Position numbers and translations under genes: made by a program
Notes under the pieces: model-generated
What the model was told of the DNA's origin: nothing
Database searches by the model: none
What the model saw: the letters and a program-made list of their open reading frames with translations, nothing else
NCBI GenBank assembly: GCA_002269645.1
Contig: NIVC01000237.1
Coordinates: forward strand, 186,001-250,000
DNA: 64,000 bases
DNA from: Macrostomum lignano
Lineage: Eukaryota
Direction of reading: 5' to 3'
In this document: positions 9,899-50,594 of the stretch, piece by piece
Position numbering within the stretch: position 1 is the stretch's first letter
How the letters are laid out: the number at the start of each line of letters is the position of its first letter

Positions 9899-10465
9899 TT
9901 AAAGCTTGTACTGGAACAGGCTCTTGGAAATGATAGCCGTGTGCGTTTGTGATTTAAGGGGCAACCTGCAAAGTGCAAGGCATCATATACTCTTTGTCAG
10001 TGCTTGTCAGAGAAGCAAGGAAGAACTGGGACTTAGGAGGGTGACTAATTTCTTAAATTGTGCATAAACTGGCAACGAGCGCAAATCAGTGTCATGAGCT
10101 TGGTGCCCAAGCCCTGTACATTTCTATTCGTTTGTCTGTTTCCCTGCTCTTCCCCTCAGTCCCCATGCCCCAACTCGAAAGATCTAGCTTTTTTAGCTTT
10201 GTTAGCGAAATTTCTACCTTGCCACACTAGCGTAAAGGGGGGGGGTGTTTTATTCTAGCTTCCAGTCCAGTGGTGCCAGCTCTAGAAGTCCCTGTTCGTG
10301 CCGATGAGTTGCTTAGAGAGAAGACACGCTCGGGGGAAGGCAATAACGAGGGTTCTAAGGTCGCAGTCATAGACATAAATGAATGGGGCAATAGCAGGGA
10401 AACGCTAATCAGCAAAGTACGAGTATGAGCTAAAAGTATTAAGTGCATTTACAATGCACTTCACT

Positions 10466-10640
10466 CTCTCCCACTCCCCTCTCTCCCACTCCACTCTCCC
10501 CCACTCCCCTCTCTCACACTCCCCTCTCTCACACTCCCCTCTCTCCCACTCTCCTCTCTCTCCCACTCCTCTGTCTCCCACTCCCCTCTCTCCCATTCCC
10601 CCTCTCTCTCCATCTCCCCCTCTCTCTCCCACTCCCCCTC
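10466..10640. repeat. Pyrimidine-rich array, ~15-bp CTCTCCCACTCCCCT
   Basis: Read directly. Confidence 0.9.
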
Positions 10641-13159: not shown

Positions 13160-14174
13160 ATGAAGCTGCCGATTCTGCTGCTGCTGCTGCCGCAAATCCT
13201 TCTGGCGTCTCACGGGCTGCAGCGCCAAGCTGAGTTCCGCCGGCTGAGCAGCGCCAACGGCTCGGCAGCGCCGCTGCGCTTTCACTTGAGTGGCGACAGC
13301 TCCGCCATTTACTGCGGAAGTCGCTGCGCTGAGCTGGCCGACTGCTTTGGGTTCGCCTTCGTCAGGCTGCTCTGCCGGCTGTTCACCTTCGATGCGTTCT
13401 TCGACACCTGGACGGCCTCCGAGCCGGGGACCGCCGTTTTCACCCGGCCGCTCAGTGAGTCTATATGGATATCCTTAGTGCTGAAAGCAATGCAATTCAG
13501 GATTGATAAAACCAGCGCCGAGGCAATTCTGACCATTTCGCTGACCCTTGAGCACGATGCATGTACACCCTTGAGCACAATGCATGTACACCCTTGAGCA
13601 CAATGCATGTACACCCTTGAGCACAATGCATGTACACCCTTGAGCACAATGCATGTACACTCTTGAGCACAATGCATGTACACCCTTGAGCACGATGCAT
13701 GTACACCCTTGAGCACATGGAATCGATCAGTTATAACTTCAAGCATACAATTTATTAACCTGCTCAGATATGGTCCAGCTGCCGATGCAGAGCTGCTCTC
13801 AGAGTTCAGTATTTGATGACGGCGTCTGCTCCCGAGCAATCGACGGCAACACTGATCAAGATCTAACCCGAGGCTCCTGTACCCATACCGGCTGCTGGCC
13901 CAGTATGCGGCAGTGGTGGACCGCCAACTTCTCTGCTGCATCGTTTGTCTCTTACGTGATCATCTACAACCGGGTGGACTGCTGCTCAAGGAGGCTGGAC
14001 GCATTCTCCATCCTACTGGATGGAGTGAGCTGCGCTGAGAGAAACGAAACGTTCTCATTCTCGGTCGGCAACTTCACGTGCGGCAGATTCGGCAGTCAAC
14101 TGACTGTGCTCAACAGCCCGGCAGAGTGCCTGAGCATGTGCGAGCTTAAAGCCTATGGCTTCAGGTTCCCTTGA
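13160..14174 (+). CDS. Secreted PAN/apple-like + F-type lectin (fucolectin) domain protein, join(13160..13454,13768..14174)
   Basis: Signal peptide MKLPILLLLLPQILLASHG. PAN-like CGSRCAELADCFGFAF...CRL. F-lectin motifs QSS...RAIDGN...CTHT...WW...YNRVDCCSRRL (H...RxDxxxxR). Donor a|gtgagt at 13455, acceptor ctcag| at 13767, phase 1. Confidence 0.85.
13545..13716. repeat. Intronic minisatellite, 23-bp GCATGTACACCCTTGAGCACAAT
   Basis: About 7 copies in the lectin intron. Confidence 0.95.
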
Positions 14175-14509
14175 AATTCAAATTGCATTGGGATTTTTCC
14201 CAGAGATTTATTTATGACTAAAAGTGGAACCTAATTTAGGCTGTCAAGCAATTGTGAGCAAAATATAACGGCCTCATCATAACGCAATCTCTATTGTGAA
14301 GCAGACAGGTAGAACCTGCCTGTCAACCTTTTTGTTCAACTTTGATCACCCACACCGGGGCAGAGCAGCTCGTAGCGGCAACCTCATCTGCCTCTCGCGC
14401 CCCGACCCCTGGTTCGATTTCCTGTGCAGTCAACATTCATTTGGGGCTTGTGCGCGCGAAATTGGCCGGTGGCTTGTCGTGCGATTTACAGCCATTAGGG
14501 CCAATCACA

Positions 14510-15675
14510 CTCCCATTCTCTTCCACTCCCTTCTCTCCCACTCCCACTCTCTCTCACACTCCCTCTCTCCCACTCCCTCTCTCCCACTCCCTCTCTCCCA
14601 CTCCCTTCTCTCCCACTCCCACTCTCTTCTCTCCCACTCCCTTCTCTCCCACTCCCTTCTCTCCCACTCCCTTCTCTCCCACTCCCTTCTCTCCCACTCC
14701 CTTCTCTCCCACTCCCTTCTCTCCCACTCCCTTCTCTCCCACTCCCTTCTCTCCCACTCCCTTCTCTCCCACTCCCTTCTCTCCCACTCCCTTCTCTCCC
14801 ACTCCCTTCTCTCCCACTCCCTTCTCTCCCACTCCCTTCTCTCCCACTCCCTTCTCTCCCACTCCCACTCTCTCTCCCACTCCCTCTCTCCCACTCCCTT
14901 CTCTCCCACTCCCTTCTCTCCCACTCCCTTCTCTCCCACTCCCTTCTCTCCCACTCCCTTCTCTCCCACTCCCTTCTCTCCCACTCCCTTCTCTCCCACT
15001 CCCTTCTCTCCCACTCCCTTCTCTCCCACTCCCTTCTCTCCCACTCCCTTCTCTCCCACTCCCTTCTCTCCCACTCCCACTCTCTCTCCCACTCCCTTCT
15101 CTCCCACTCCCTTCTCTCCCACTCCCTTCTCTCCCACTCCCACTCTCTCTCCCGCTCCCTCTCTCCCACTCCCTCTCTCCCACTCCCTCTCTCCCACTCC
15201 CTCTCTCCCACTCCCTCTCTCCCACTCCCTCTCTCCCACTCCCTCTCTCCCACTCCCTCTCTCCCACTCCCTCTCTCCCACTCCCTCTCTCCCACTCCCT
15301 CTCTCCCACTCCCTCTCTCCCACTCCCTCTCTCCCACTCCCTCTCTCCCACTCCCTCTCTCCCACTCCCTCTCTCCCACTCCCTCTCTCCCATTCCCTCT
15401 CTCTTCTCTCCCACTCCCTTCTCTCCCACTCCCTTCTCTCCCACTCCCTTCTCTCCCACTCCCCTCTCTCCCACTCCCACTCTCTACATCTCCCCTCTCT
15501 CCCACTCTCCTCTCTCCCACTCTCATCTCTCCCACTCTCTACCTCTCCCACTCTCTCCCACCCCCTCTCTCCCACTCCCCTCTCTCCCACTCCCCTCTCT
15601 CCCACTCCCCTCTCTCCCACTCCCCTCTCTCCCACTCCCCTCTCTCCCACTCCCCTCTCTCATTCCCCCCTCTCT
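14510..15675. repeat. Pyrimidine-rich array, 15-bp CTCTCCCACTCCCT(T/C)
   Basis: Read directly; left flank of the LINE fragment. Confidence 0.95.
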
Positions 15676-15699
15676 CATGAATTAAATTAAAACCTGCTA

Positions 15700-17050
15700 C
15701 GAAGCCCTTTAAAAGGTGCAGGGACGTGCGTGCCGCATGATCCTGAATGCCCCGCTCTCTGCTCCCTTTGACGGCCTCTCAACGCTTTTCTCTGCCTCCC
15801 GCCCCTGGACATCTTCGTCCGTCGCGAGGCTGCTAAAACCACCCGCCGGCTCATCGAGGCTGGCGTTAGCTTCAAGCCACAAAGAGCGATGGCGAAGCGC
15901 AAGCTCCTGCCGCACTCTGACCTGAGCCTTAAAGTTCTGGAGGAGAGCGGGAGTGCGGCTGTCCTTTCGGACGCTTGAGCCGCGCTCCCTCAATCTCTAC
16001 CAACGCTTCAAGGTCACGATCCCTCTAGGGAGAACGCCAACGACAGCTGGGCCCCTCAGGAGGTTGGACTGCTTCACTGGATCCTCCAAAGACGGTTTAT
16101 CCGGTTTTGGAATCTGCATCCTTATCAACGGCCGCGTGATCGCTACTCACGCCCAACACACTGGCAGACTCTCCAGCGTCTTCCAGAACGAAGTCCTTGC
16201 CATCAACTCCTGTGCAGCTGAGCTCCACTGCAGGGACTTCAAGGACAGAAGAATCTTCTTCCACTCTGACAGCCAGGCCGCTTTACAGGCCCTGTGTCAC
16301 ACCACTACGAACTCCCGAACAGTCCGTGACTGTATCGGGCAGCTCAACAAGCTGGCTTGGAGAAACACCGTCCGGCTTACGTGGATCCCAGGACACGCCG
16401 CCTTCAAAGGTAACGAGCTCGCCGACTCCCTCGCTAAGGCAGGCTGTTCCGGCTCGCTCCTTGGCCCCGTGCCCCTGGCCCCCATCCCCGCCACAGTCAT
16501 TAATGTCAGATTAACGACTGGGCGGACATCCTGCACTTGCGCAGATGGGGTGGCATTTCCAACTGCCGCCAATCTCGTGCAGCTGTGCCCAATCCGTCCC
16601 TCAAGCTGCGGAGAATTCTTTTGAACCAAAATCGAAAAGATATCCGCGCTCTCACTATGACCTTCACTGGTCACGGTTGCTTTGCCAGGCACTGCTTCCT
16701 CCGAAGTGTTCGCCGGAGCGAACTCTGCCCCTTCTGCAACCTCGAGAACGAAGACGCCAAGCACTTCGTCTGCTACTGCCCGGCCTTCAACCGAGACCGG
16801 CTCAACCACCTTGGGCCCAACCCGTCCCTAGACGACGCTTGCCGGCCCGAGAACATCCCATGGCTCATCCGGTTCCTCCGGGCCACCAAACGAGCCTCCG
16901 TCTTCCCCACCGAAGACAACGCTGCAGACAGGACCGGCAGACCTCCCTGACCGGCCCCGCGCCCTAGCCTATGCGGGTCTTTCAGGGATTAGCGGAATGG
17001 GCGACGCTCGCCTCCCTGCTGCGTCTTCGGACCGCCCTGCAGCTAAGTCT
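15700..17050 (+). mobile_element. 5'-truncated, degenerate non-LTR retrotransposon (LOA/R1/I-group-like): post-RT linker, RNase H, CCHC knuckle, 3' UTR
   Basis: QGRACRMILNAPLSAP...PPLDIFVRREA (linker). SVFQNEVLAI...SDSQAAL...WIPGH...GNELADSLAK (RNase H). FTGHG...CPFC...EDAKHFVCYCPAF (zinc knuckle). Several frameshifts; the catalytic TDGS reads TGSS. Confidence 0.85.
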
Positions 17051-17056
17051 AAAAGC

Positions 17057-17858
17057 CCCCCTCTCTCCCACTCCCCTCTCTCCCATTCCCCTCACTCCCA
17101 CTCCCCTCTCCCCCACTCTCCCTCTCCCCCACTCCCGCTCTCTCCCACTACCTTCTCTCCCACTCTCTCCCACTCCCCTCTCTCCTACTCCCCTCTCTCC
17201 CACTCCCCTCTCCCCCACACTCCCTCTCCCCCACTCCCCCCTCTCTCCCACTCCCCTCTCTCCCATTCCCCTCTCTACCACTCCCATCTCTCCCACTCCC
17301 ATCTCTCCCACTCCCATCTCTCCCACTCCCATCTCTCCCACTCCCATCTCTCCCACTCCCATCTCTCCCACTCCCATCTCTCCCACTCCCATCTCTCCCA
17401 CTCCCATCTCTCCCACTCCCATCTCTCCCACTCTCTACCACTCCCATCTCTCCCACTCCCATCTCTCCCACTCCCATCTCTCCCACTCCCATCTCTCCCA
17501 CTCCCATCTCTCCCACTCCCATCTCTCCCACTCCCATCTCTCCCACTCCCATCTCTCCCACTCCCATCTCTCCCACTCTCTACCACTCCCATCTCTCCCA
17601 CTCCCATCTCTCCCACTCCCATCTCTCCCACTCCCATCTCTCCCACTCCCATCTCTCCCACTCCCATCTCTCCCACTCCCATCTCTCCCACTCCCATCTC
17701 TCCCACTCCCATCTCTCCCACTCTCTACCACTCCCATCTCTCCCACTCCCATCTCTCCCACTCCCATCTCTCCCACTCCCATCTCTCCCACTCTCTACCA
17801 CTCCCATCTCTCCCACTCCCATCTCTCCCACTCTCTACCACTCCCCTCTCTCCCATTC
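17057..17858. repeat. Pyrimidine-rich array, 15-bp CTCTCCCACTCCCAT
   Basis: Read directly; right flank of the LINE fragment. Confidence 0.95.
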
Positions 17859-17879
17859 CGAATAATGCGAGTATGGATT

Positions 17880-20800
17880 TCGCTAGAGTTGCCCCGGCCC
17901 TCTCCAACTGCAGCGCCATCTGAAGGAAGTTCGTAGCGGTGGAGTAGGGTCTCGAACCCGCGGCCATCTGGTACACTGAGCAGCCAAACGCCCAGATGTC
18001 CGATTTGCGGCTGTACCGCGGACCAGCCGCTGGGTCATCTGGCGCCAGCAGCTCCGGCGCTAGAAAGTTCAACGTGCCCTTTGGTGAAGAAGTAGACGCT
18101 GTCACGCGACTGACAGCTTGTTCAAGTTTGATTGACAGGCCGAAATCGATTAATTTTATGCGATTGTCAGCTAAGCAAACAATCATATTGCTGCAGTTGA
18201 TGTCTCTGTGTATCACCGGCGGCTTCCGGCCGTGCATGTAGCTCAGGGCGCTGCAGATCTGCCGGGGTGGGTGCGCCGGAGTCATTGAAGCTCATTCTAA
18301 CTGCTTCTTTTAGTTTGTTCATGATGAAGGATCCTGGTGCCATTCATTGATCAGATCCTGGTGCCATTCATTGATCAGATCCTGGTGCCATTCATTGATC
18401 AGATCATTGCGCCACTTCTTAATCATATCTTGGCACCCCTTGTTCTCATTCCCAGAATCCTTCCTGTGCGGTGAACTTCTTAATAACAGCTTCATCAAGA
18501 GGCTTGCTGTCGATAAAAGTCTCCAAGCTGCAACCGTCCAGCAGCTCCATGAACAGGACAATCTTGGCGGACTCCAGCTTGGCGATGTGAAAGAATTTCA
18601 CGATATTCGGATGGTCCAGCAGACAGAAGTTTCTCTCGCTCTCCACTACCCTTCTGACCTCTCTGGCTTTGAGATCGTCCTGCATCTGCTGATGCTGCAG
18701 CTGCACTGGCAGCTGGATGGTTTTGGCAGCGCAGCGGAACCGGATATCGGTGAGAACTTCGTGCACCTCGCCGAATCCTCCGCGGCCTAGCGGGCGTTTG
18801 TTGTCCCAGGTGTGGCGGAATGGCCGGCTGCAAAATGAAGCTTATCTTCTTTTAAGAGCTTATTTTTGGAAAATTTGAGAAACTAATTTTTCTGGAAAAA
18901 TGTTCTGCTCTTACGAATCGAGTTTGACGTCGTCAAAGTAGTTCCTGCCTTCGTACATGCGGTTGATTGGGGCAATAGGAAAGTCCTTTAGTTCCTGCAT
19001 ACTTCAGGTTATGTCTTATAATTCAGGTCCCACACCCTTCAGCTCCTGAGATCCCACACCCTTCAGCTCCTGAGATCCCACACCCTTCAGCTCCTGAGTT
19101 CCTACACCCTTCAGCTCCTGAGATCCCACACCCTTCAGCTCCTGATATCCCACACCCTTCAGCTCCTGAGATCCCACACCCTTCAGCTCCTGAGTTCCTA
19201 CACCCTTCAGCTCCTGATATCCCACACCCTTCAGCTCCTGATATCCCACACCCTTCAGCTCCTGAGATCCCACACCCTTCAGCTCCTGAGATCCCACACC
19301 CTTCAGCTCCTGAGATCCCACACCCTTCAGCTCCTGAGGCCCCACACCCTTCAGCTCCTGAGATCCCACACCCTTCAGCTCCTGAGTTCCTACACCCTTC
19401 AGCTCCTGAGATCCCACACCCTTCAGCTCCTGATATCCCACACCCTTCAGCTCCTGAGATCCCACACCCTTCAGCTCCTGATATCCCACACCCTTCAGCT
19501 CCTGAGATCCCACACCCTTCAGCTCCTGAGTTCCTACACCCTTCAGCTCCTGAGATCCCACACCCTTCAGCTCCTGAGGCCCCACACCCTTCAGCTCCTG
19601 AGATTCCACACCCTTCAGCTCCTGAGGCCCCACACCCTTCAGCTCCTGAGATCCCACACCCTTCAGCTCCTGAGATTCCACACCCTTCAGCTCCTGAGTT
19701 CCTACACCCTTCAGCTCCTGAGATCCCACACCCTTCAGCTCCTGAGATCCCACACCCTTCAGCTCCTGATATCCCACACCCTTCAGCTCCTGAGATCCCA
19801 CACCCTTCAGCTCCTGAGATTCCACACCCTTCAGCTCCTGAGATCCCACACTCTTCAGCTCCTGAGGCCCCATCGCTCACTCCAGCAGCAGCTCGACCAG
19901 GTCGCTGCTCCTGTGCTCCCTGGCCAAGTCCAGCGCTGTTCGCCCCTTCCAGTCTTTGAGGCTCCAGTCGGCGCCAGCCGCTAGCAGAGCGGCGCCAACA
20001 GCCGCGCCAGTCGCATCTGGCGCCAGCGCCGCCAGCATCAGCGCAGTGCTCGAGTTGAGATTCGGAGAATTCACCGGAGCGCCAGCCTCCACCAGAGATG
20101 AAGCTGCCACGAAATTGCATCCGCTAGCAGCCAAATGCAAGCAGTTGCCCGAGAACATGTTGCTGGCACAGGTCCCACAGGTCCACGCTGTTTAGATCCG
20201 GGTTCCCTGCCGCCCACATCAGCACCGTCCGGCCCTCGGTGTCCGGTAAGTCGCAGCTGTCCGCCGACGCCAAATTTTTAAGTCCAATTGAATCACCCTT
20301 CTTGGCGAGTGAAATCAGCTGATCGCGGATGGCCGCATCCTGGATTGACGACGGATTGTTTATTATTCAAAGTATTTAACTAAATGGCGCTTGAAATACA
20401 GGTAATGAATGAGTACAGGTAACTTACGAAATGAGACAAGCCGGAGAGCTCGATTCCCCTCAGTACGAGCTGCGTCTCCCAGCAACAGGGAATTGGATTG
20501 GCAGAAATCCGGCTTGTGCTACTTTAAGTAGAAACCTTTTAGTCTCGAGATGGACGGTTATGATCTGTTGTAGAAGGTGGTTGGTTCTGTGGAGTGGTTG
20601 GTGCTGTCGGTGGTGGGTGCTGTGGGGTGGGTGGTTCTGTGGGGTGGGTGGTTTCTGCAGGGTGGGTGGTTCTGTGGGGTGGATGGTTTCTGCAGGGTGG
20701 TGGGTTCTGTGGGGTGGATGGTTTCTGCAGGGTGGTGGGTTCTGTGGGTTGTGGGTGCTGTGGGTGGGTGCTGTGAGGTGGTGGGTGCTGTAGGTGGGGG

Positions 20801-21752
20801 GTTCTGTAGGGTGGTGGTTTCTGTGGGTTGTGGGTGCTGTGGAGTGGGTGGGTTCTGTGGGGTAGTGGGTTCTGTGGGGTGGTGGGTGCTGTGGGGTGGG
20901 TGGGTTCTATGGGGTAGTGGGTTCTGTGAGGTGGTGGGTGCTGTGGGGTGGGTGGGTTCTATGGGGTAGTGGGTTCTGTGGGGGGGTGGGTGCTGTGGGT
21001 GGTGGGTGCTGTGGGTGGTGGGTGCTGTGAGTGGGGGATGCTGTAGGGTAGTGGGTTCTGTGGGGTGGTGGGTGCTGTGGGGTGGGTGGATTCTATGGGG
21101 TAGTGGGTGCTGTGGGTGGTGGGTGCTGTGGGTGGTGGGTGCTGTGGGTGGTGGGTGCTGTGGGTGGTGGGTGTGTGGCACGAACAAGTCCTGCTATCGA
21201 CCAGCTCTTTCGCACCAGCAGCAAATGCCACAGCCTCGGCCTTACCGCTGAATATCCTTAGCCAGTTCTGGGAGACCGCAGCGAGCCGCCACACCCATGG
21301 CAGTGCGGCCGTCGAGATCCGTCAGCTTCAGCAGCCGCTTTCGGGTCTTGTCGGCCCGCCTCTCGCAGTCGCCGCAGTGCCTGGCCTCGCGCAGCAGGTG
21401 CAGAAGGTGCTTGGCGCACCTGCGGCTGCCAGACCGCGCCGCCTCAGTCAGCGGGGCGGCGCCTTGCTTGTTCTGCAGCCACTTGGCGTCGAACCGGAGT
21501 AGAGCCAGCACTCGCAGGTGGTCCCGCCTGGCCGCCAAATTCGCGGCCGTGTTGCCAGCCTCGTTCTTCGCTGTCGGGTCCGCGCCCAAGTGTAGCAAGT
21601 ACTCGATGCACTTTCCTGCCTCCGGTGATGAGCCGGAAGGGTCGGCCGCCCACGTGAGGACGGTGCGGCCGGTCTGGTCGGTGGCCGCCGCCAGCTGAGG
21701 AGTCAGGCGCTGCGGAGCTCGCTGAAGTCGCCTTTGGCAATCAGCTGGGCTC
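17880..21752 (-). CDS. Ankyrin-repeat + Ser/Thr protein kinase (STE/MAP3K-like domain), with apparent lesions
   Basis: Exons ~21752-21246 (ANK: DQTGRTVLTWAA, GNTAANLAA), tentative ~20522-20428, 20340-19881 (ANK: EGRTVLMWAA, TALMLAA), ~19001-18915, 18827-18464 (LGRGGFGEV, AAK, FMELL), 18258-~17880 (HRDINCSN, DFG, GTLNFLAPE, SDIWAFG). Frameshifts near 21710 and 20180; the donor at 18463 reads GA. Start and kinase C-terminal end unresolved. Confidence 0.7.
18328..18400. repeat. Intronic 24-bp repeat GATCCTGGTGCCATTCATTGATCA x3
   Basis: Read directly, in the kinase-domain intron. Confidence 0.9.
19025..19872. repeat. Intronic minisatellite, 24-bp CCCACACCCTTCAGCTCCTGAGAT (~35 copies)
   Basis: Read directly. 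Confidence 0.97.
20575..21180. repeat. Intronic G/T-rich degenerate array (GGTTCTGTGGGGTGGT / GGGTGCTGTGGGTGGT)
   Basis: Read directly. Confidence 0.9.
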
Positions 21753-21829
21753 CTGATTTTGGATTCGGTGGGTGATTTTGCATCAGATGTTCCTAAAAGT
21801 CTCTAATTCGGAGTTGAGAGGTTACAAAA

Positions 21830-22860
21830 CATCAGAATCCCACACCCCAGAATCTCACACACAAGAATCCCACACCCCAGAATCCCACACACAATAATCC
21901 CACACCCCAGAATCTCACACACAATAATCCCACACCCCAGAATCTCACACACAATAATCCCGCACCCCAGAATCTCACACACAATAATCCCACACCCCAG
22001 AATCTCACACACAATAATCCCACACCCCAGAATCTCACACACAATAATCCCACACCCCAGAATCTCACACACAATAATCCCGCACCCCAGAATCTCACAC
22101 ACAATAATCCCGCACCCCAGAATCTCACACACAATAATCCCACACCCCAGAATCTCACACACAATAATCCCACACCCCAGAATCTCACACACAATAATCC
22201 CACACCCCAGAATCTCACACACAATAATCCCGCACCCCAGAATCTCACACACAATAATCCCACACCCCAGAATCTCACACACAATAATCCCACACCCCAG
22301 AATCTCACACACAATAATCCCACACCCCAGAATCTCACACACAATAATCCCGCACCCCAGAATCTCACACACAATAATCCCGCACCCCAGAATCTCACAC
22401 ACAATAATCCCACACCCCAGAATCTCACACACAATAATCCCACACCCCAGAATCTCACACACAATAATCCCACACCCCAGAATCTCACACACAATAATCC
22501 CACACCCCAGAATCTCACACACAATAATCCCACACCCCAGAATCTCACACACAATAATCCCGCACCCCAGAATCTCACACACAATAATCCCACACCCCAG
22601 AATCTCACACACAATAATCCCACACCCCAGAATCTCACACACAATAATCCCACACCCCAGAATCTCACACACAATAATCCCGCACCCCAGAATCTCACAC
22701 ACAATAATCCCACACCCCACACCCCTGAATCCCCACACCCAGAATCCCACACACAAGAATCGGCCACACCCAGAATCTCACACACAATAATCCCACACCC
22801 AGAATCCCACAACCCCAGAATCCCACACCCAGAATCCAACACCCCAGAATCCCACAAATT
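21830..22860. repeat. Minisatellite, 30-bp AATCTCACACACAATAATCCCACACCCCAG
   Basis: About 30 near-perfect copies, decaying at the edges. Confidence 0.97.
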
Positions 22861-23149
22861 ATTACCTTTAAATCGTTACCATTGACCTCCATCGCTGCAG
22901 GTGACCAAGAGGCAAAACCGTAGTTTTTATTATAAAATTTCACGGGCCAAGAAAGCGTGCAGCATGCAGTTGAAAACCTCGAGCTTGCACAAGAATTTAT
23001 AGCCATTGGAAAGATCCTAAATAGATTTTTTCCACTCTTACTACTACTAGATAAGTAGAAAGGAAATATTGCTTTAATCAAATTAAAAAAACAAAAAACT
23101 GTCTTAACTTGGTTGTACTAGCGAACTAGCTCATATTCATGAATATTAA

Positions 23150-23460
23150 TAATAATATTAATATTATTTGATTTCACTTATTCTAATGAGCAAATTTGCA
23201 ACCGACAGCTCAACCGCAGCTATTGCGCGGCGCATCTGAAGGCTGCGTACGGCTGTTCAGTCCAAGGACTGGGGGGTCGCCACACACAGCCTCAATTACC
23301 CCAGCTAATGCTGGCACCCATTTTACATCTGGGTAAACTGAAGCAATATGTAGAGTTGGGTGTCTTGATCAATGACACAAACTGTTCCAGTGTAATCGGG
23401 AATCGAACCCCCGACCTTCAAGTCGCGAGTCCGACGCTCTAACCACTAGACAACAACCCC
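23150..23460 (-). mobile_element. tRNA-headed SINE with a CORE (MIR-type)-like central domain
   Basis: Minus strand reads GTCTAGTGGTTAGAGCG...GGTTCGATTCCC (A/B boxes), then GTGTCATTGATCAAGACAC...CTTCAGTTTACCCAGATGTAAAATGGG, resembling the CORE consensus. AT-rich tail near 23150-23170. No TSD found. Confidence 0.6.
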
Positions 23461-23509
23461 TCACAAACAAGGGGTTGTAGTTGTGAATATAGCAGGCATT
23501 TTTATAGTG

Positions 23510-23740
23510 TGAGGTGAGGTGGGTGTGTGGAGTGAGGTGGGTGTGTGGAGTGAGGTGAGTGTGTGGAGTGAGGTGAGTGTGTGGAATGAGGTGGGTGTGA
23601 GAAGTGAGGTGAGTGTGTGGAATGAGGTGGGTGTGAGACGTGAGGTGAGTGTGTGGAGTGAGGTGGGTGTGAGACGTGAGGTGAGTGTGTGGAATGAGGT
23701 GGGTGTGCGGAGTGAGGTGGGTGTGAGAAGTGAGGTGGAA
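23510..23740. repeat. 18-bp array GTGAGGTGGGTGTGTGGA
   Basis: Read directly; related arrays at 27115-27440 and 30230-30415. Confidence 0.9.
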
Positions 23741-23944
23741 TCATTGATTGAAAATTGAATTTCAAATAAAATCTCGTTAACTGAAGAATGCAGAGTACGT
23801 GCACTTTAGTCTATGGCAGAGACAGCAGTGATTAAGTTCATCTAGGCCGCATTGTATATTTTAATCTGCATTTCGCGGTGAATTACACTCAGTGGCTGAA
23901 GTCCGGAAATTGTATCTGCAATTGAATCAAACAACGAGAAGGAG

Positions 23945-24849
23945 ATGCGCGCCATCACTCAGTTGTTTCTGGTCAGCTGTCTGGTGCTGATTGCAGCAGC
24001 TGGTCTGAGCGAGGCCTGCCTAGCCCGTAAGTGGAGCCGCTTCGATTGGCCTGTTTCGAGTATAGGTATATATATATATATATATAAATACTTCGGATTT
24101 TCCTGATTTTTTTTGAAAAAAAGAGACTGATTAAGTGTCCAATGTATGAAAAAGTTAAAGGAAATCAAAGATCAAAAGGTCAAATCCGCCCCCTCTATCC
24201 ACACTGCGAACAATCCAATCCACCCCCTCTATCCACACTGCGAACAATCCAATCCGCCCCCTCTATCCACACTGCAAACAATCCAATCCACCCCCTCTAT
24301 CCACACTGCGAACAATCAAATCCGCCCATCTATTCACACTGCGAACAATCCAATCCGCCCCTCTATCCACACTGCGAACAATCCAATCCGCCCCTCTATC
24401 CACACCGCAAGCGATCAAATCCGCCCCCTTCTATCCACACTGCGAACGATCAAATCCGCCCCTCTATCCACACCGCAAGCGATCAAATCCGCTCCTCTAT
24501 CCACACCGCAAGTGATCAAATCCGCCCCTCTATCCACACCGCAAGTGATCAAATCCGCCCCCTTCTATCCACACTGCGAACGATCAGATGCACCCCCTCT
24601 ATCCACACCGCAAGCAATCAAATCCGCCCCTCTATCCACACCGCAAGCAATCAAATCCGCCCCCTTCTATCCACACTGCGAACGATCAAATCCGCCCCCT
24701 CTATCCACACAGCGAGTCATGGAGTGTCTCATCATGCTCAAAATCAACTCCCGCTACCCCACCCTCTGTCTGCAGCCATACTCGGTGCGGTGGGCGGCAA
24801 GCTGCATAAAATTATAGCAAAGAAGATCAAGTACGTCATCAAAGGCTGA
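23945..24849 (+). CDS. Predicted 51-aa secreted cationic peptide precursor A, join(23945..24026,24776..24849): MRAITQLFLVSCLVLIAAAGLSEA/CLAPILGAVGGKLHKIIAKKIKYVIKG*
   Basis: Signal peptide with S-E-A site. Donor c|gtaagt at 24027, pyrimidine-tract acceptor ccctctgtctgcag| at 24775, phase 1. Exon 1 is identical (82/82 nt) to copy B while the flanks diverge. Confidence 0.75.
24180..24712. repeat. Intronic minisatellite, ~34-bp CCACAC(C/T)GC(A/G)AGCGATCAAATCCGCCCCCTCTAT
   Basis: Read directly, in the peptide A intron. Confidence 0.95.
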
Positions 24850-25582
24850 GTTCAGAGGCTGACCAGCTGCACAAGATTCTGCTGTTCCAAAATTTACGGC
24901 ATGTTTTCAACTTTTTCACGAGGAAAATCACTTTGCTCGTGTACTTCTGTTTAAGAAGCAAACAATTGAGCTTATTAGCCGATTTTGTTTCAGTTTTATT
25001 TTGATACGCAACATGGACTGTAGTGTAGGGGCGCGTGTGTAAGTGCATAGCAAGTTTATTTTAGCATGGCATCAGCTGACCACACTGTACCAGCCTGTTT
25101 GCTGCAGGTATATAAATACATTGCTATATAGATGTACAATTGCTTTGCTTGCCTTTTGCTGCTGTGTGGAGGTCGGTCTGTAAACTGTGAATTTATGTGC
25201 TAACACTACTTAAAGTAGCTAGATAGTAAGCTATGCAAGAATAATCAAAGTTGGATTAAGGAGTGAGAGTTTAGATCAGAATGGCAATGGAGTCTGTGAG
25301 GCGGTTGGGATCCAGATTGGGAAGAGAATGAGATGAGGACGGGGATGAGGATGGCATGAGACTGCCTCATGATTAGGGCTGTGAAATATAATGTACGAAA
25401 GCATACGAAATAAGCAAGCAAGTTAATGACTAATGATGCCCTAGGTAGCTCTCTAAATCTTCAAGAACATTCCCATTTACCACTGAAACATTCCTATATT
25501 CTACTAACACATTCCCATACCCTACTGACAAATTACTACATCCCACTGACACACTCCCATATCCCACTGACACATTCTCATA

Positions 25583-25642
25583 TCGCGACCGGTGCGTGCC
25601 AACTCGAGAAACAGTCTGGCGCGCGGCGCGCTGTCTAACAGG
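25583..25642 (-). pseudogene. 60-bp remnant of exon 3 of the RERG-like GTPase gene
   Basis: Matches 31549-31608 (cgcga.cggtgcg.gccaactcgag.aacagtctggcgcgcggcgcgctgtctaacaggg). Confidence 0.85.
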
Positions 25643-25644
25643 GG

Positions 25645-26400
25645 TAAAATGGGGTGGTTTTTAGCTGATTGGAGTGGTTGTTGGCGGAGCGGGGTGAATT
25701 TTGGCGGAATGGGGTGGTTGTTGGCGGAGTGGGGTGGTTGTTGGCGGAGTGGGGTGGTTGTTGGCGGAGTGGGGTGGTTGTTGGCGGAGTGGGGTGGTTG
25801 TTGGCGGAGTGGGGTGGTTGTTGGCGGAGTGGGGTGGTTGTTGGCGGAGTGGGGTGGTTGTTGGCGGAGTGGGGTGGTTGTTGGCGGAGTGGGGTGGTTG
25901 TTGGCGGAGTGGGGTGGTTGTTGGCGGAGTGGGGTGGTTGTTGGCGGAGTGGGGTGGTTGTTGGCGGAGTGGGGTGGTTGTTGGCGGAGTGGGGTGGTTG
26001 TTGGCGGAGTGGGGTGGTTGTTGGCGGAGTGGGGTGGTTGTTGGCGGAGTGGGGTGGTTGGTTCTGTGGGGTGGTTGGTTCTGTGGGGTGGTTGGTTCTG
26101 TGGGGCGGTTGGTTCTGTGGGGTGGTTGGTTCTGTAGGGTGGTGGATTCTACGGGGTGGTTGGTTCTGTGGGGTGGTTGGTTCTGTAGGGTGGTGGATTC
26201 TACGGGGTGGTTGGTTCTGTGGAGTGGTGGGTGCCTTGAGGTATCTACGCTCGTATAATAGGTTCTGTAGAGTGGTAGCTTCTGTGGGGTGGTGGGTGCT
26301 GGGGTCAGAGGGTGCTATGGGGTGGTGGGTTCTGTGGATTTTTTTGGGAGGGGTGTTGTGTGTTAGTGGGTGTTGTGGGGTGGTGGGTGTGTGGCACGAA
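25645..26400. repeat. Chimeric array: 20-bp GGGGTGGTTGTTGGCGGAGT switching at ~26055 to GGTTCTGTGGGGTGGTT
   Basis: The left part equals the GTPase intron-2 array (31682-32112); the right part equals the ankyrin-intron array (20575-21180). Confidence 0.9.
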
Positions 26401-26461
26401 CAAGACCTGCTATTGACCAGCTCTTTCACACCAGCAGCAAATGCCACAGCCTCGGCCTTAC

Positions 26462-26773
26462 CGCTGAATATCCTTAGCCAGTTCTGGGAGACCGCAGCGA
26501 GCCGCCACACCCATGGTAATGCGGCCGTCGAGATCCGTCAGCTTCAGCAGCCGCTTTCGGGTCTTGTCGGCTCGCCTCTCGTAGTCGCTGCAGTGCCTGG
26601 CCTCGCGCAGCAGGTGCAGAAGGTGCTTGGCGCACCTGCGGCTGCCAGACCGCGCCGCCTCAGTCAGCGGGGCGGCGCCTTGCTTGTTCTGCAGCCACTT
26701 GGCGTCGAACCGGAGTAGAGCCAGCACTCGCAGGTGGTCCCGCCTGGCCGCCAGGTGCGCCGCCGTGTTGCCA
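26462..26773 (-). pseudogene. Truncated duplicate of the ankyrin exon
   Basis: Near-identical to 21246-21558 (GNTAAHLAARRDHL...AKDIQR). The 5' half is missing and replaced directly by the AATCCCACACCCCAG array. Confidence 0.85.
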
Positions 26774-27440
26774 GAATCCCACACCCCAGAATACCACACC
26801 ACAGAATCCAACATCTTAGAAACCCATGCACACCAGAATCCCACGTGCAATAATCCCACACACAAAATCCCACACCCCAGAATCCCACACCCCAGAATCC
26901 CACACCCCAAAATCCCGCACTTAGAATCCTACACACAATAATCCCACACACAGTGATCGCACACACAATAATCTCACACATAATAATCCCACAAACAACA
27001 ATCTCACACACAATAATCCCACACATTATAATCCCACAGAACAACAATCTCACACACAATAATCCCAACACACAATAATCTCACACACAATGATCCCAAA
27101 CCCCAGAATTCCATGTGGGGTGGGTGAACAGAAGTGGGGTGGGTTGTCGGGTGGGGTGGGGGTGGGAGTGGGGTGGGTGTGGGAGGGAGTGGGTGTTGGA
27201 GGGAGGTTGGTGTGGGAGGGAGGTGGGTGCGGGAGGGAGGTTGGTGTGGGAGGGAGGTGGGTGTGGGAGGGAGGTGGGTGCGGGAGGTAGGTTGGTGTGG
27301 GAGGGAGGTGGGTGTGGGAGGGAGGTGGGTGTGGGAGGGAGGTGGGTGTGGGAGGGAGGTGGGTGTGGGAGGGAGGTGGGTGTGGGAGGGAGGTGAGTGT
27401 GGGAGGGAGGTGGGTGTGGGAGGGAGGTGGGTGTGGAAGG
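26772..27440. repeat. Degenerate AATCCCACAC array (26772-27110) followed by GGGAGGGAGGTGGGTGT array (27115-27440)
   Basis: Counterparts of 21830-22860 and 23510-23740 in the duplicated block. Confidence 0.9.
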
Positions 27441-27661
27441 AAATGTTAGTTGAAAATGGATTTCAATGCAATCAAGTCTCATTTAACTGAAGAATGCGGC
27501 GTATGCTCTTTAGTCTATGGCAGAGACAGCAGTGATTAAGTTCAACTGGCGCCACATTGCATTTATTTTTAATCTGCACTTCGTGGTGAATATCACTCGT
27601 AGGCTTAAGTCTCAAATTCGCATCTAGAACTGAAGCATCAAAACAGGAATTACAAGCGTAG

Positions 27662-29218
27662 ATGCGCGCCATCACTCAGTTGTTTCTGGTCAGCTGTCTG
27701 GTGCTGATTGCAGCAGCTGGTCTGAGCGAGGCCTGCCTAGCCCGTAAGTGGAGCCGCTTCCTGGGTGGGTCTCTTTAAGTTTAGGTATATTATAATAAAA
27801 TATGCTATTTCAGAATTCCGGATTTTATGAAACTTCCAGCGACTGACTCAGTGCCCAATGTGAAAAAAAGTTGAAGAAATCAAAGGTCAAAAAATCCTAA
27901 ACCACCCCCAAAATCCACACCGTAAAAAATCAAATCCGCCTCCTCTATCCACACCGTAAAAAATCAAATCCGCCTCCTCTATCCACACCGCAAGCAATCA
28001 AATCCGCCCCCTCTATCCACACCGCAAGCGATCAAATCCGCCCCCTCTATCCACACCGCAAGCGATCAAATCCGCTGCCTCTATCCACACCGCAAGCGAT
28101 CAAATACGCCTCCTCTATCCACACCGCAAGCGATCAAATCCACCTCCTCTATCCACACCGCAAGCGATCAAATCCGCCCCCTCTATCCACACCGCAAGCG
28201 ATCAAATCCGCTGCCTCTATCCACACCGCAAGCGATCAAATACGCCTCCTCTATCCACACCGCAAGCGATCAAATCCGCCCCCTCTATCCACACCGCAAG
28301 CGATCAAATCCGCCCCCTCTATCCACACCGCAAGCGATCAAATCCGCTGCCTCTATCCACACCGCAAGCGATCAAATACGCCTCCTCTATCCACACCGCA
28401 AGCGATCAAATCCACCTCCTCTATCCACACCGCAAGCGATCAAATCCGCCCCCTCTATCCACACCGCAAGCGATCAAATCCACCCCCTATATCCAAACCG
28501 CAAGCGATCAAATCCACCCCCTCTATCCACACCGCAAGCGATCAAATCCACCCCCTATATCCAAACCGCAAGCGATCAAATCCACCCCCTCTATCCACAC
28601 CGCAAGCGATCAAATCCACCCCCTATATCCACACCGCAAGCGATCAAATCTGCCCTCTCTATACACACCGCAAGCGATCAAATCCACCCCCTATATCCAA
28701 ACCGCAAGCGATCAAATCCACCCCCTCTATCCACACCGCAAGCGATCAAATCCACCCCCTATATCCACACCGCAAGCGATCAAATCTGCCCTCTCTATAC
28801 ACACCGCAAGCGATCAAATCCACCCCCTCTATCCACACCGCAAGCGATCAAATCCACCCCCTCTATCCACACCGCAAGCGATCAAATCCACCCCCTCTAT
28901 CCACACCGCAAGCGATCAAATCCACCCCCTCTATCCACACCGCAAGCGATCAAATCCACCCCCTCTATCCACAACGCAAGCGATCAAATCCACCCCTCTA
29001 TCCACACCGCAAGCGATCGAATCCACCCCCTCTATCCACACCGCAAGCGATCAAATCCACCCCCCTCTATCCACAGAGCGAGTCATGGAGTGTCTCATCA
29101 CGCTCAAAATCAACTCCCGCTACCCCACCCTCTGTCTGCAGCCATACTCGGTGCGGTGGGCGGCAAGCTGCATAAAGTGATAGCAAAGAAGATCAAGAAA
29201 ATCAAGTTCCGAGGCTGA
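27662..29218 (+). CDS. Predicted 52-aa secreted cationic peptide precursor B, join(27662..27743,29142..29218): MRAITQLFLVSCLVLIAAAGLSEA/CLAPILGAVGGKLHKVIAKKIKKIKFRG*
   Basis: Same donor (27744) and acceptor (29141) as copy A; phase 1; ends Gly-stop. Confidence 0.75.
27895..29076. repeat. Intronic minisatellite, 34-bp CCACACCGCAAGCGATCAAATCC(G/A)CCCCCTCTAT (~34 copies)
   Basis: Read directly, in the peptide B intron. Confidence 0.97.
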
Positions 29219-29679
29219 CCAACTGCACAAGATTCTGCTGTTCCAAAAAGTCCGGCCTGTTGTCAACTTTTTCACGAGGAAAATCACTTTTCTTGTGTGC
29301 CGTATTTCTGTTTAAGAAGCAAACAATAGCTTATTAGCTGATTTTGTTTCAGTCTTATTGCTGAACGCAACATGTACTGTAGAGGCGTATGTAAGTGCAG
29401 AGCATGTATCGTATTTTAGCATGGCATCAGCTGACCAAACTGTACCAGCCTGTTTACTGCAGGTATATAAATACATTGCTATATAGATGTACAGTTGTTT
29501 TGCTTGTCTTTCGCTGCTCAAAGTTTTTCAGTTGTGTACAGGAGGTCGGTGTGTAAACTGTGAATTTATGTGCTAACACTACTTAAAGTAGCTGGATAGC
29601 AGCTATGCAGCAATAAAAAAGTTGGATTGAGGGGTGAGAGTTTAGATCAGAATGGCAATCGAGTTTGTGAGGCGGTGGG

Positions 29680-29970
29680 GATGAAGATGGGGATGAGGAT
29701 GAGGATGACAATGGGATGAAGATGGGGAGGAGAATGGGGATGAGAATGGGATGAAGATGGGGAGGAGGATATGGATGAGAATGGGGATGAGGATGAGGAT
29801 GAGGATGAGGATGAGAATGGGATGAAGATGGGGAGGAGGATGGGGATGAGAATGAGGATGAGGATGAGGATGGGATGAAGATGGGGAGGAGGATAGGGAT
29901 GAGAATGGGGATGAGGATGGGGATGTGGATGGGGATGAGGATGGGGATGAGGATGGGGATGAGGATGAGG
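29680..29970. repeat. (GATGAG/GATGGG)n array
   Basis: Read directly; similar array at 30790-30940. Confidence 0.9.
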
Positions 29971-30519
29971 TTGAAGATTGCCATATCTTTCGGTTGAGCT
30001 TTCGGTTATATACATTCAGCAAGCCTCTTACTTGTCCTATGGGACTGATGGAGAAGAATAATCGAAATAACTGATGAAATACTCAGAATGAATAAGAAAT
30101 TAACAGACGATATAAACCAACTTTTGAAAACAAAAGCAAAAAACTGCATATTATGCATGTAGATGATACTTCAAATGTACACACGTTTAACTTATGAGTA
30201 TGTTATTTTTTATGTACTACATGTATGTAGTGGGGTGGATGTTGGGGTGAGGTGGGTGAGGGAGTAAGCTGGGTGTGGGAGTGAGGTGGGTGCGGAAGTG
30301 ACCTGGGTGAGGGAGTGAGGTGGGTGTGGGAGTGAGGTGGGTCTGGGAGGGAGGTGGGTGTGGAAGTGACCTGGGTGTGGGAGTGAGGCGGGTGTGGGAG
30401 TGAGGTGGGTTTGGTATAAAAAATACAAATTAAGAATATTGTTGTACATGAAGAGCAGCGGTGTAAAATGTGTATGAATCAGTGGTTAACTCAATCTATT
30501 TATTGCTTCTGGCATCAAC

Positions 30520-32952
30520 TTAGCCGTCAGCCTGCTGCTCCTGCTGCTGCTCTCTCTTCTTTGCTCCCGATGTGGTCGCAGGCAGCCAGCGAGACTCGAG
30601 CGACATGAGGTCCTCTTCCCTGAGAGCCAGCATGCTCGGCCTCGAGTGTCGCTGCTGCTGCAGCTGCCCGCGGTCCGGCAGGCTGGCCTTGCGCAGGCTG
30701 TGGCCCTGCCCGATGCTCAGGTGGCCCTCGGCGATCAGGCCGGTGAAAATCAGGTCGATGATCTTCGGATCCTCAGCGGCGGATGTCTGAGATGAGGATG
30801 GGGATGGGGATGGGGATAAGGATAGGGATGAGGATGAGGATGAGGATGAGGATGGGGATGAGGATAGAGATGAGGATGATGTTGAGGATGTAATAAAAAT
30901 GGGGATAAGAATGGTGATGGGGATGGGGATGAGGATGGTATGAGACCGCCTCATGATTAGGGTTGTGAAATATGTACTAAAGCATATGAAAAAAGCAAGC
31001 AAGTAAATGACTATTGATGCTCTAAGTAGGTCTCTAAATATTCAAGAACATTCCCATATACCACTGACACATTCCTATATTCTACTAACACATTCCCATA
31101 CCCTACTGACAAATTACTACATCCCACTGACACACTCCCATATCCCACTGACACATTCCCATATCTCACTGACACACTCCCATATCCCACTGACACAACT
31201 CCCACATCCCACTGACACACTCCCATATCTCACTGACACACTCCCATATCCCACTGACACAACTCCCACATCCCACTGACACACTCCCATATCCCACGGA
31301 CACATTCCCATATCCCACGGACACATTCCCATATCTCAAAAATAAAAAAAGTATCAAAATTATTCCGGCTCGCCATCCGCTGGTGATCCCCGCTCACCAC
31401 GAAGTGCCGACAGCGGAACTGGCTGCTGAGAATCTCCATTTCGGCCTTGTTGTTGCCGTGGCCGCAGTAGGCCAGATCCGTCTTGTTGCCAACCAGCACG
31501 GCTGGCAGGCGGCGCTCCTTGGCTGTGCCAGCCGAAACCGCGGCGTTGTCGCGAACGGTGCGCGCCAACTCGAGGAACAGTCTGGCGCGCGGCGCGCTGT
31601 CTAACAGGGTGACGTCGTAAACGAATAGGAAACTGTCGGCCCAGCTCAGGCAGGCCGAGAGACCGTTGAACCCGCGGCGCTGGGGGTGGTTTTTGGCGGT
31701 GTGGGGTGGTTGTTAGCGAATTGGGGTGCTTATTAGCGAATTGGGGCGGTTGTTGGCGGTGTGGGGTGGTTGTTGGCGGAGTGGGGTGGTTGTTGGCGGA
31801 GTGGGGTGGTTGTTAACGAATTGGGGTGGTTGTTGGCGGAGTGGGGTTGTTGTTAGCGAATTGGGGCGGTTGTTGGCGGTGTGGGGTGTTTGTTAGCGGA
31901 GTAGGGTGGTTGTTAGCGAATTGGGGCGGTTGTTGGCGGTGTGGGGTGGTTGTTAACGAATTGGGGTGGTTGTTGGGCGGAGTGGGGTGGTTGTTGGCGG
32001 AGTGGGGTGGTTGTTGGTGGAGTGGGTGGTTGTTGGCGAATTGGGGTGGTTGTTGGCGGAGTAGGGTGGTTGTTGGGCGGAGTGGGGTGGTTGTTGGGCG
32101 GAGTGGGGTGGTGTCATCAATGAACAGCAATAAAACAATAATGCCACTAAATCGAGTTCACCTCGTAGGAAGAGGTGTCAAGAATCTCCACATCAATGGT
32201 GCTGTCTTGCAGCACAGCCCGGTGCCTGTAGAGAATATCGATACCGGACTGATAGGTCTCGATGAACCGCTTGGACAGGTAGCGCACTAGAAGGGCTGCG
32301 ACAGTCATAGAGAGAGTTTTTGTTGTAAAAAAAGTTGTTTTAGCTCGTACGAGCTCGTAGACCCCAGTCTGCAAAATGTTATGCCCACACGCACTCGCCG
32401 ATACAAAAAAACAAAATACGTGCAACGCAGCCAGCAGGCAGTCGACAAAAGCTGAGTGAGTGTCCGGGGCACCTGCAACGACTTAAAGATTCGTAGAGGC
32501 CCTGCTGGCCTAGCAGCGTCACTCATGAATTCACATATAAACTCGTTCATGAGCTCATGAACTCAGTGATTAAACCACTCATAAATCACTCGTGAAGTCA
32601 TTCATAACCTAGTCATAATCCCATTATGATCTCACTTGTGAACTTAATTATGATCTCACTAATGAACTCAGTCATGAACTCAGTCATGACCTCAGTCATG
32701 ACCTCAGTCATGAACTCACTCATGACCTCAGTCATGAACTCAGTCATGAACTCACTCATGACCTCAGTCATGACCTCAGTCATGAACTCACTCATGACCT
32801 CAGTCATGAACTCAGTTATGAACTCAGTCATGAACTCACTCATGACCTCACTCATGACCTCAGTCATGAACTCACTCATGACCTCAGTCATGAACTCACT
32901 CACCAGTTTTTCCGCAGCCATCCGGCCCAGCAATGACCAATCTGACTGGCAT
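30520..32952 (-). CDS. Ras-family small GTPase, RERG/RERGL/RASL11-12-like, join(32952-32904, 32295-32162, 31679-31398, 30786-30520)
   Basis: MPVRLVIAGPDGCGKT|ALLVRYLSKRFIETY...EILDTSSYE|...WADSFLFVYDVT...VLVGNKTDL...FV|TSAAED. G1, G4 and G5 motifs present; all three introns are GT-AG and in phase; no CaaX. Confidence 0.85.
30790..31335. repeat. GTPase intron-3 arrays: (GATGAG/GATGGG)n at 30790-30940 and ~21-bp CCCATATCCCACTGACACACT at 31040-31335
   Basis: Read directly. Confidence 0.9.
31682..32112. repeat. GTPase intron-2 array, 20-bp GGGGTGGTTGTT(G/A)GCG(G/A)A(G/T)T
   Basis: Read directly. Confidence 0.92.
32520..32903. repeat. GTPase intron-1 array, 12-bp TCATGA(A/C)CTCA(G/C)
   Basis: Read directly; begins at the splice donor. 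Confidence 0.92.

Positions 32953-34330: not shown

Positions 34331-39811
<5,481 letters not shown>

Positions 39812-41013: not shown

Positions 41014-50594
<9,581 letters not shown>

Follow-up and report, generated by a model that had tools for sequence, protein, structure and literature searches.

The window analysed here is a 64,000-nt stretch of the Macrostomum lignano genome assembly Mlig_3_7 (contig NIVC01000237.1, assembly GCA_002269645.1). It contains two tandemly arranged two-exon genes, here called gene A and gene B, that encode short cationic precursors with a signal peptide, candidates for antimicrobial peptides (AMPs). Both genes had been proposed in a sequence-only reading, with exons at 23945-24026/24776-24849 and 27662-27743/29142-29218, and these boundaries were exact to the base: the coding sequence (CDS) ends given for both genes in GenBank coincided with them. 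In the following list, positions are those of the window and UTR stands for untranslated region.

20576-25650, plus strand: tandem duplication unit 1, with minisatellite blocks, a minus-strand ankyrin-like fragment and peptide gene A
23739-23944, plus strand: gene A conserved 5′ flank, putative promoter/5′UTR, from a four-way alignment and a motif scan
23945-24026, plus strand: gene A exon 1 CDS, 27 codons + 1 nt, encoding the signal peptide and the start of the mature peptide; ATG at 23945
24027-24775, plus strand: gene A intron, 749 nt; donor GTAAGT at 24027, polypyrimidine tract, acceptor CTGCAG ending at 24775
24776-24849, plus strand: gene A exon 2 CDS, encoding PILGAVGGKLHKIIAKKIKYVIKG and ending in GGC TGA; stop TGA at 24847-24849
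24850-25290, plus strand: gene A probable 3′UTR, with AATAAT at 25240; four-copy conservation stops at ~25290
26049-31600, plus strand: tandem duplication unit 2, with the same blocks and peptide gene B; tandem arrays in the same order as in unit 1
27450-27661, plus strand: gene B conserved 5′ flank, putative promoter/5′UTR; TATA-like motif at 27564-27572
27662-27743, plus strand: gene B exon 1 CDS, sequence as in exon 1 of gene A (100% identity)
27744-29141, plus strand: gene B intron, 1398 nt
29142-29218, plus strand: gene B exon 2 CDS, encoding PILGAVGGKLHKVIAKKIKKIKFRG; stop at 29216-29218
29219-29660, plus strand: gene B probable 3′UTR, with a canonical AATAAA at 29612

The duplication unit measured ~5.5 kb; 26233-26772 and 21041-21556 were 91.5% identical in a self-BLAST of the window, and the flanks of gene A matched those of gene B. 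The spliced open reading frame (ORF) of gene A was MRAITQLFLVSCLVLIAAAGLSEACLAPILGAVGGKLHKIIAKKIKYVIKG (51 aa), and that of gene B, of 52 aa, ended in KLHKVIAKKIKKIKFRG. In the motif scan, a T/A-rich, TATA-like motif lay at 23857-23864, 86-88 nt upstream of the ATG of gene A, and the start codon was the first ATG downstream of this motif. The blocks TTAACTGAAGAATG, TATGGCAGAGACAGCAGTGATTAAGTTCA and TTTTTAATCTGC of the 5′ flank were invariant in the four-way alignment, which combined A and B copies from two loci, and from this we infer a promoter function for the flank.

The genes had been described as hidden, but both are in GenBank as a "hypothetical protein" that matched the predicted precursor exactly: gene A as PAA87303.1 / BOX15_Mlig003473g1 (51 aa) and gene B as PAA87304.1 / BOX15_Mlig003880g1 (52 aa). 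An independent MAKER/SNAP model on the older ML2 assembly gave the same 51-residue protein. The GenBank annotation of Mlig_3_7 uses transcript evidence only: RNA sequencing (RNA-seq) data were processed through STAR, StringTie and TACO, merged with a de novo transcriptome and searched for ORFs with TransDecoder (PMC5730564). Because this annotation was built from RNA-seq and its CDS contain the junctions 24026/24776 and 27743/29142, spliced transcripts with these junctions were assembled, as the sequence-only reading had predicted. This transcript support comes from the published annotation, not from the reads themselves.

The signal peptide consisted of the n-region MR, an 18-residue hydrophobic core and two sites that fit the −3/−1 rule. 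It would be removed either at A19/G20 (AAA/GLSEAC), which is the published SignalP 4.1 call, or at A24/C25 (SEA/C), the site preferred in the sequence-only reading, whose mature N-terminus thus departed from the published one. The same reading held that the mature products contain no acidic residues; this is true for cleavage after SEA, but the SignalP site leaves one Glu, so the statement is insecure. Depending on the site, the predicted mature peptide has 26-32 residues and is not accompanied by an acidic propiece. AlphaFold2, run on a 3-sequence alignment, returned one uninterrupted helix from residue 3 to residue 50 (pLDDT 72), which is weak evidence. Such an unbroken helix would also suit a membrane-anchored microprotein, with an uncleaved signal anchor and a Lys-rich tail held against the membrane surface, and the hydrophobic residues 4-21 are long enough to span a bilayer. 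SignalP 4.1, which was trained to separate signal peptides from anchors, nevertheless called a cleavable signal peptide, and both −3/−1 sites are good. In addition, the 15 residues past the hydrophobic core are net neutral, which by the charge-difference rule points, from sequence, to the normal orientation of a cleavable signal. We therefore attach hardly any probability to the anchored form.

The counts of 6 Lys in peptide A and 7 Lys plus 1 Arg in peptide B were right as previously given, and the net charge, if the peptides are amidated, was +6 to +7 in A and +8 to +9 in B. Mean Eisenberg hydrophobicity was 0.26 in A and 0.09 in B. Hydrophobic moments were computed at 100 degrees on the Eisenberg scale, with P values from 5000 shuffles. 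With the C25 N-terminus, peptide A had a moment of 0.41 (P = 0.02). The best 18-residue windows reached 0.56 in A and 0.51 in B; the same computation gave 0.55 for melittin, 0.51 for magainin 2 and 0.54 for pleurocidin. On the helical wheel of peptide A, five Lys fell inside 80 degrees and the remainder formed a broad hydrophobic face. A narrow cationic face combined with a broad hydrophobic face is the geometry usual for lytic peptides. A C-terminal Gly donates the amide in peptide amidation, and the PHM/PAL enzymes responsible are present in flatworms. The precursors ended in Gly (GGC TGA) in all five gene copies, in agreement with the sequence-only reading; amidation itself is predicted only.

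The five copies include paralogous genes, Mlig009903g1 and Mlig009903g2, on two further contigs that we labelled L001 and L002. Over ~16 kb, L002 was colinear with the window at 82-93% identity, and it carried the same pair, an A-type gene followed 5.2 kb downstream by an intact B-type gene (exon-1 tracts at 10001-10088 and 15193-15280, respectively). Because this second locus has both members, the A/B duplication predates the divergence of the two loci. All copies, on three loci or contigs, retained the ATG, both splice sites, the Cys, the Gly-stop and an intact ORF, and the Cys codon of one copy showed a synonymous change from TGC to TGT. Frame-breaking indels were present at the 3′ end of the intron and none was found in the CDS. 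Coding identity between loci was 97.6-98.7% vs. 91-96% in the flanks, a modest excess that concerns only three substitutions per gene.

The intact B-type paralogue of L002 (15193-16100) was absent from the called genes and is apparently unannotated in GenBank; relative to gene B of the window it carried the changes F8L and L30F. Contig L001 (NIVC01004201.1) had an A-type gene and, unlike L002 and the window, no B-type copy within ~10 kb downstream (12250-21907), which may reflect either a difference in structure or an artefact of assembly. The two contigs were otherwise ~100% identical around the gene.

Within the window, exon 1 was identical between genes A and B at 82 of 82 nt, and the sequence-only reading was correct that the signal exon is fully conserved between diverged flanks. 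The identity reached 17 nt into the intron, so that 23945-24043 equals 27662-27760. Identity fell to 82-93%, with many indels, upstream of the genes, in the 5′ portion of the intron and in the 3′UTR, and the flanks overall gave 78-93%; the final 60 nt of the intron together with the initial 38 nt of exon 2 were 97-98% identical. At flank divergence, the chance of finding no difference in 82 nt is 1e-5 to 1e-7. At codon 8, genes A and B of the window had TTT (Phe), and the three paralogous-locus copies all had CTT (Leu); the difference tracks locus and not gene type. Because F8/L8 is shared in this way, gene conversion between the tandem copies appears to be the simplest explanation of at least part of the exon 1 identity. 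Purifying selection alone was rejected as an explanation, since the identity runs into the intron and codon 8 varies locus-wise. It follows that the identical signal exon cannot be read as AMP-style selection alone: the combination of conserved signal and variable helix, earlier presented as typical of AMPs, is present, but gene conversion would account for it at least in part.

All coding differences between A and B lay downstream of codon 39. The earlier placement of the changes in the C-terminal half was thus accurate, but they are not a series of point substitutions: the tails (24826-24865 vs. 29192-29225) differed by a 10-nt indel, TACGTCATCA, and by a relocated Gly-stop. A second, out-of-frame GGCTGA near 24857-24862, in the 3′UTR of gene A, was homologous to the Gly-stop of gene B. 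Despite the indel, both tail versions end in GGC TGA, which is consistent with selection to keep a Gly for amidation; alternatively, the motif may have been copied in a small local duplication. The pair appears to evolve in three ways: by local duplication, by gene conversion over the 5′ coding part and by changes to the C-terminal tail.

The variability of the tail also bears on whether the genes encode a neuropeptide or peptide hormone. Signal peptide, internal dibasic KK and C-terminal Gly make up the standard grammar of amidated neuropeptides, and cleavage at KK with amidation would give IKYVIK-NH2 from A and IKFR-NH2 or IKKIKFR-NH2 from B. The would-be amidated core, however, differs wholly between the paralogues (YVIK vs. 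KIKFR) and the "spacer" is invariant, the reverse of the conservation expected. We found no KR or RR sites, no repeated peptide copies and no similarity to known neuropeptide families in Pfam or in a profile hidden Markov model (HMM) library, and no propeptide cleavage was predicted by ProP in a published screen described below (empty PP column, S5 rows, PMC10414684). Because the amidated core is the variable part and ProP recognized no cleavage site, a precursor of this kind is very improbable.

Most of both introns, each bounded by GT..AG, was filled by a 33/34-bp minisatellite that is related between A and B; the sequence-only reading had noted a minisatellite intron. The array covered 24180-24715 in gene A (~16 copies) and 27902-29075 in gene B (34-bp unit, 34.5 copies). 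Over all genes, copy number was ~8, 16 and ~45 in the A type and ~15 and 34.5 in the B type; the paralogous arrays lay at 10240-11770 of L001 and at 10240-10510 and 15440-15960 of L002. The minisatellite is old, because its position was identical in every copy. The difference in array length between L001 and L002 looks like a variable-number tandem repeat between alleles or very recent duplicates. The minisatellite intron was rejected as a special feature of these genes, tandem arrays being commonplace in the window and in the genome. Forty-one strong arrays (TRF score ≥ 200; periods of 12-46 bp and multiples) covered 36.7% of the window, and many of its mechanically called ORFs of 150-900 aa were merely translated minisatellites. 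Simple and tandem repeats make up 15% of the M. lignano genome (PMC5730564).

Acceptors upstream of those in the models had been expected to change the frame. This applied to 29076/29077 in gene B; 29078/29079 in the same gene keeps the frame, and 24712/24713 in gene A is also in frame and would add 21 residues, giving a 72-residue precursor. The final 63 nt of each intron (24713-24775 and 29079-29141) are open and in frame with both exons, and a 72/73-residue isoform is possible on this ground. The upstream AG was missing in both copies at the paralogous locus (CACTGCGAG), where, in addition, 4 nt inserted into the downstream C-tract of the A-type copy disrupt the frame. Acceptor 24713 was rejected for these reasons. 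Since neither the AG nor the frame is conserved, the conserved CAG/CC is taken as the real acceptor, and the two 63-nt segments are probably non-coding.

Similarity searches placed the precursors in no described family. The profile HMM search over 1.84 billion representatives, which may not include other Macrostomum transcriptomes, recovered only the query's own cluster. Pfam-A at E up to 10 gave 0 families for both precursors, cecropin included, and a PDB sequence search at E up to 10 gave 0 hits for both candidate mature forms. Because Pfam, PDB and the 1.84 billion representatives yielded no homologue, the family is, by sequence comparison, lineage-restricted, and it falls outside the cecropin, dermaseptin, helminth defence molecule (HDM) and mesco families. 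By analogy, it probably belongs to the linear cationic helical peptides, which are a functional class and not a homology family.

Within that class, the layout resembles that of melittin: ~26 residues, a Gly/Pro-containing hydrophobic N-terminal part, a Lys/Arg-rich C-terminus and a precursor ending in Gly. This is a resemblance in design, not homology. Promelittin has an acidic, Pro-rich propiece that is cut stepwise, whereas the M. lignano precursors have none; the M. lignano peptides carry a conserved Cys and share no sequence homology with melittin, and their lytic activity is only predicted. Magainin, pleurocidin/piscidin, cecropins and dermaseptin-type peptides are comparable in their secreted precursor, net positive charge and organization as tandem multigene families with a conserved signal and a variable mature region; an amphipathic helix and C-terminal amidation, frequent in that group, are predicted for the M. 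lignano peptides. They differ from these classical helical AMPs in having no Pfam or PDB match and no acidic propiece, and from the frog-type AMPs in that their conserved signal exon seems to reflect gene conversion, at least partly, and not frog-type selection. Known flatworm peptides, namely Mesco-1/2/3 of Mesocestoides corti, fAMP-LP-5, fAMP-LP-17 and SmDLP, are secreted cationic helices, as is predicted for the M. lignano products. Mining of genomes by similar criteria (signal peptide plus cationic window) brought them to light, but they are unrelated in sequence and precursor design. Mesco-2, for instance, derives from a 141-residue precursor, is kinked at GRGIGRG and bears a CLGRC disulfide loop at its C-terminus; those mesco genes that were described are intronless, whereas the M. 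lignano peptides come from two-exon genes of a free-living macrostomid and have a single Cys. Distinctin, halocidin and dicynthaurin are disulfide-linked dimeric AMPs with a single Cys per short cationic helical chain. Two related chains encoded side by side could in principle form homodimers or heterodimers in the same manner, a lead only; the Cys of the M. lignano peptides is at or near the N-terminus, and there is no homology.

The sequence-only reading had regarded the family as undescribed, but the peptides are already in print as candidates. Irvine et al. 2023 (PLoS Pathog 19:e1011508, PMC10414684) screened WormBase ParaSite proteomes, both M. lignano assemblies included, by means of SignalP 4.1, ProP and a set of AMP prediction tools. 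The S5 File of that study, "Flatworm AMP-LPs" (AMP-like peptides) lists BOX15_Mlig003473g1 (row 536), BOX15_Mlig003880g1 (row 537), BOX15_Mlig009903g2 (row 538) and the ML2 model (row 479), and the precursor sequences in these rows were identical to those of the genes described here (PMC10414684). The rows give signal peptide "Y", a "Prediction %" of 90.9 (~10 of 11 tools) and as predicted peptide GLSEACLAPILGAVGGKLHKIIAKKIKYVIKG or its B form (PMC10414684). All are labelled "Ungrouped", grouping being dependent on a BLASTP score of at least 100 bits to another AMP-LP (PMC10414684). Ungrouped and single-genome peptides were dropped before prioritisation and testing, and these peptides were never synthesised (PMC10414684). 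A 32-residue peptide seems unlikely to reach 100 bits, which would explain why paralogues remained ungrouped. The S5 entries give no family name and no gene structure, tandem arrangement, gene conversion or tail indel. The genes are thus public but unnamed and unprioritised.

Taken together, these data led us to give about an even chance to the reading that the transcribed genes A and B encode minimal prepropeptides that yield secreted, membrane-active host-defence or cytolytic effectors. After removal of the signal peptide, the conserved C-terminal Gly would be converted to an amide by the flatworm PHM/PAL enzymes. The product would combine a flexible, Gly/Pro-rich hydrophobic N-terminal part (CLAPILGAVGG) with a C-terminal, Lys-rich amphipathic helix (KLHK[I/V]IAKKIK...) whose narrow cationic and broad hydrophobic faces are melittin-like. 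Such a peptide would most likely bind and permeabilise anionic membranes, and on that account could serve as a host-defence (antimicrobial) or cytolytic effector secreted in mucus, in the gut or by glands. Disulfide-linked dimers would be possible through the one conserved Cys. In sum, the family is real, restricted to this lineage and probably membrane-active, with an antimicrobial or toxic role as its putative function.

Several results weigh against the effector reading. With the SignalP N-terminus, the moment of peptide A fell to 0.29 (P = 0.08), and that of peptide B was 0.30 at full length (P = 0.19) and 0.21 with the SignalP N-terminus (P = 0.35); the amphipathic periodicity claimed earlier stands for the C-terminal halves, which are comparable with the reference lytic peptides, but not for full-length B. 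The identical signal exon reflects gene conversion, at least in part, and hence is no evidence for AMP-style selection. A word index of 5.8 billion proteins, which again may not include other Macrostomum transcriptomes, returned one cluster, all M. lignano, and no homologue outside the species from which a function could be borrowed. Between loci, there were only 1-2 non-synonymous and 1-2 synonymous changes per gene, too few for dN/dS. Among 20 synthesised AMP-like peptides, 12 were inactive and 8 active, a base rate of ~40% (PMC10414684). The identifiers Mlig003473, Mlig003880 and Mlig009903 were not found in the main text of the literature searched, nor in the supplements searched (PMC5816591, PMC12732829, PMC12896417, PMC7336406 and PMC5730564).

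The restriction to one species and the scarcity of substitutions, too few to demonstrate purifying selection, would also be expected of a young orphan transcript pair that has no selected peptide function. The locus would then be transcribed and spliced while the short ORF yields no stable translation product or is selectively all but neutral, the AMP-like appearance being a by-product of Lys-rich, A/G-rich sequence. The very repeat-rich surroundings (37% tandem arrays) and the lack of a B-type copy on the paralogous contig L001 fit this view. We nevertheless consider it improbable: ORF, splice sites, Cys and Gly-stop are retained in 5 of 5 copies while the adjacent non-coding DNA gathers many indels, the peptide ORF is the longest in the modelled spliced mRNA and begins at its first ATG, and a canonical signal peptide is rare in random ORFs.

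The base rate of inactivity, together with a secretory signal and small size that suit many secreted products, is compatible as well with a secreted peptide in a non-lytic role, be it reproductive (seminal fluid), in mucus or adhesive glands, immunomodulatory or in signalling. Fast-evolving, lineage-restricted small secreted proteins in tandem are typical of Macrostomum reproductive and gland genes (the theme of PMC7336406), and trematode HDMs, which form cathelicidin-like amphipathic helices, are reported to be without antimicrobial activity (PMC3708846). Against such a role, the peptides go beyond what structure or signalling needs: ~30 residues carry a net charge of +6 to +9, the N-terminal half is hydrophobic and the moment lies in the melittin range. 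The gene identifiers were also not found in the supplementary tables searched from the Macrostomum reproduction-gene paper (PMC7336406), a weak argument. A non-lytic role is therefore possible but, in our judgement, unlikely.

A much stronger version of the effector reading may also be stated. In it, the pair would be the first family of host-defence or cytolytic peptides whose function can be defined in a flatworm that is both free-living and genetically tractable, and amidated chains would pair through Cys as a heterodimeric membrane-active effector. Gene conversion would hold the 5′ end uniform, and frameshifting indels would reshape the tail and restore the Gly-stop. Taken as a whole, this would be a long shot. 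Readings other than those set out here receive only a sliver of probability.

M. lignano offers transgenesis, RNA interference and a transparent body. If gene A or B were validated as encoding a secreted lytic peptide under a ~200 bp promoter, it would provide a reporter for gland cells and a tractable flatworm model of immunity in the mucosa or gut. Published AMP pipelines show a weak point here: peptides scoring 90.9% were discarded, apparently because 100-bit grouping is beyond 32-residue peptides, and species-specific groups were removed as well. What is gained in practice is modest: these candidates had been public before, and further value would now come only from bench work.

In the neighbourhood of the genes, a minus-strand ORF with an ankyrin-repeat domain (Pfam Ank_2, E = 5.5e-07) was found at 26461-26910 and again at ~21200-21556, having been duplicated as part of the 5.5-kb unit. 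Further along on the same strand, at 17728-18285, lay an ORF with a protein-kinase domain (Pkinase, E = 2.5e-25). No GenBank gene is called at either position, and these ORFs may be what is left of an ankyrin-kinase gene or exons of such a gene that escaped annotation; if they are exons, peptide gene A would lie between the exons of that gene. On the plus strand, an ORF with an RNase H domain (15953-16621; E = 1.7e-08, RVT_3-like) was located between minisatellite blocks and is probably a retroelement remnant. The annotated neighbour at 34331-39218 (minus strand) is an MBT/SLED/SAM gene (Scm/L3MBTL-like), and DEAD-box helicase exons occupied 46193-48446 (minus strand), with introns that also contain minisatellites. 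The region 48001-56000 was AT-rich (GC 30-40% vs. ~50-59% elsewhere) and included a purine-rich low-complexity block at ~52170-52730.

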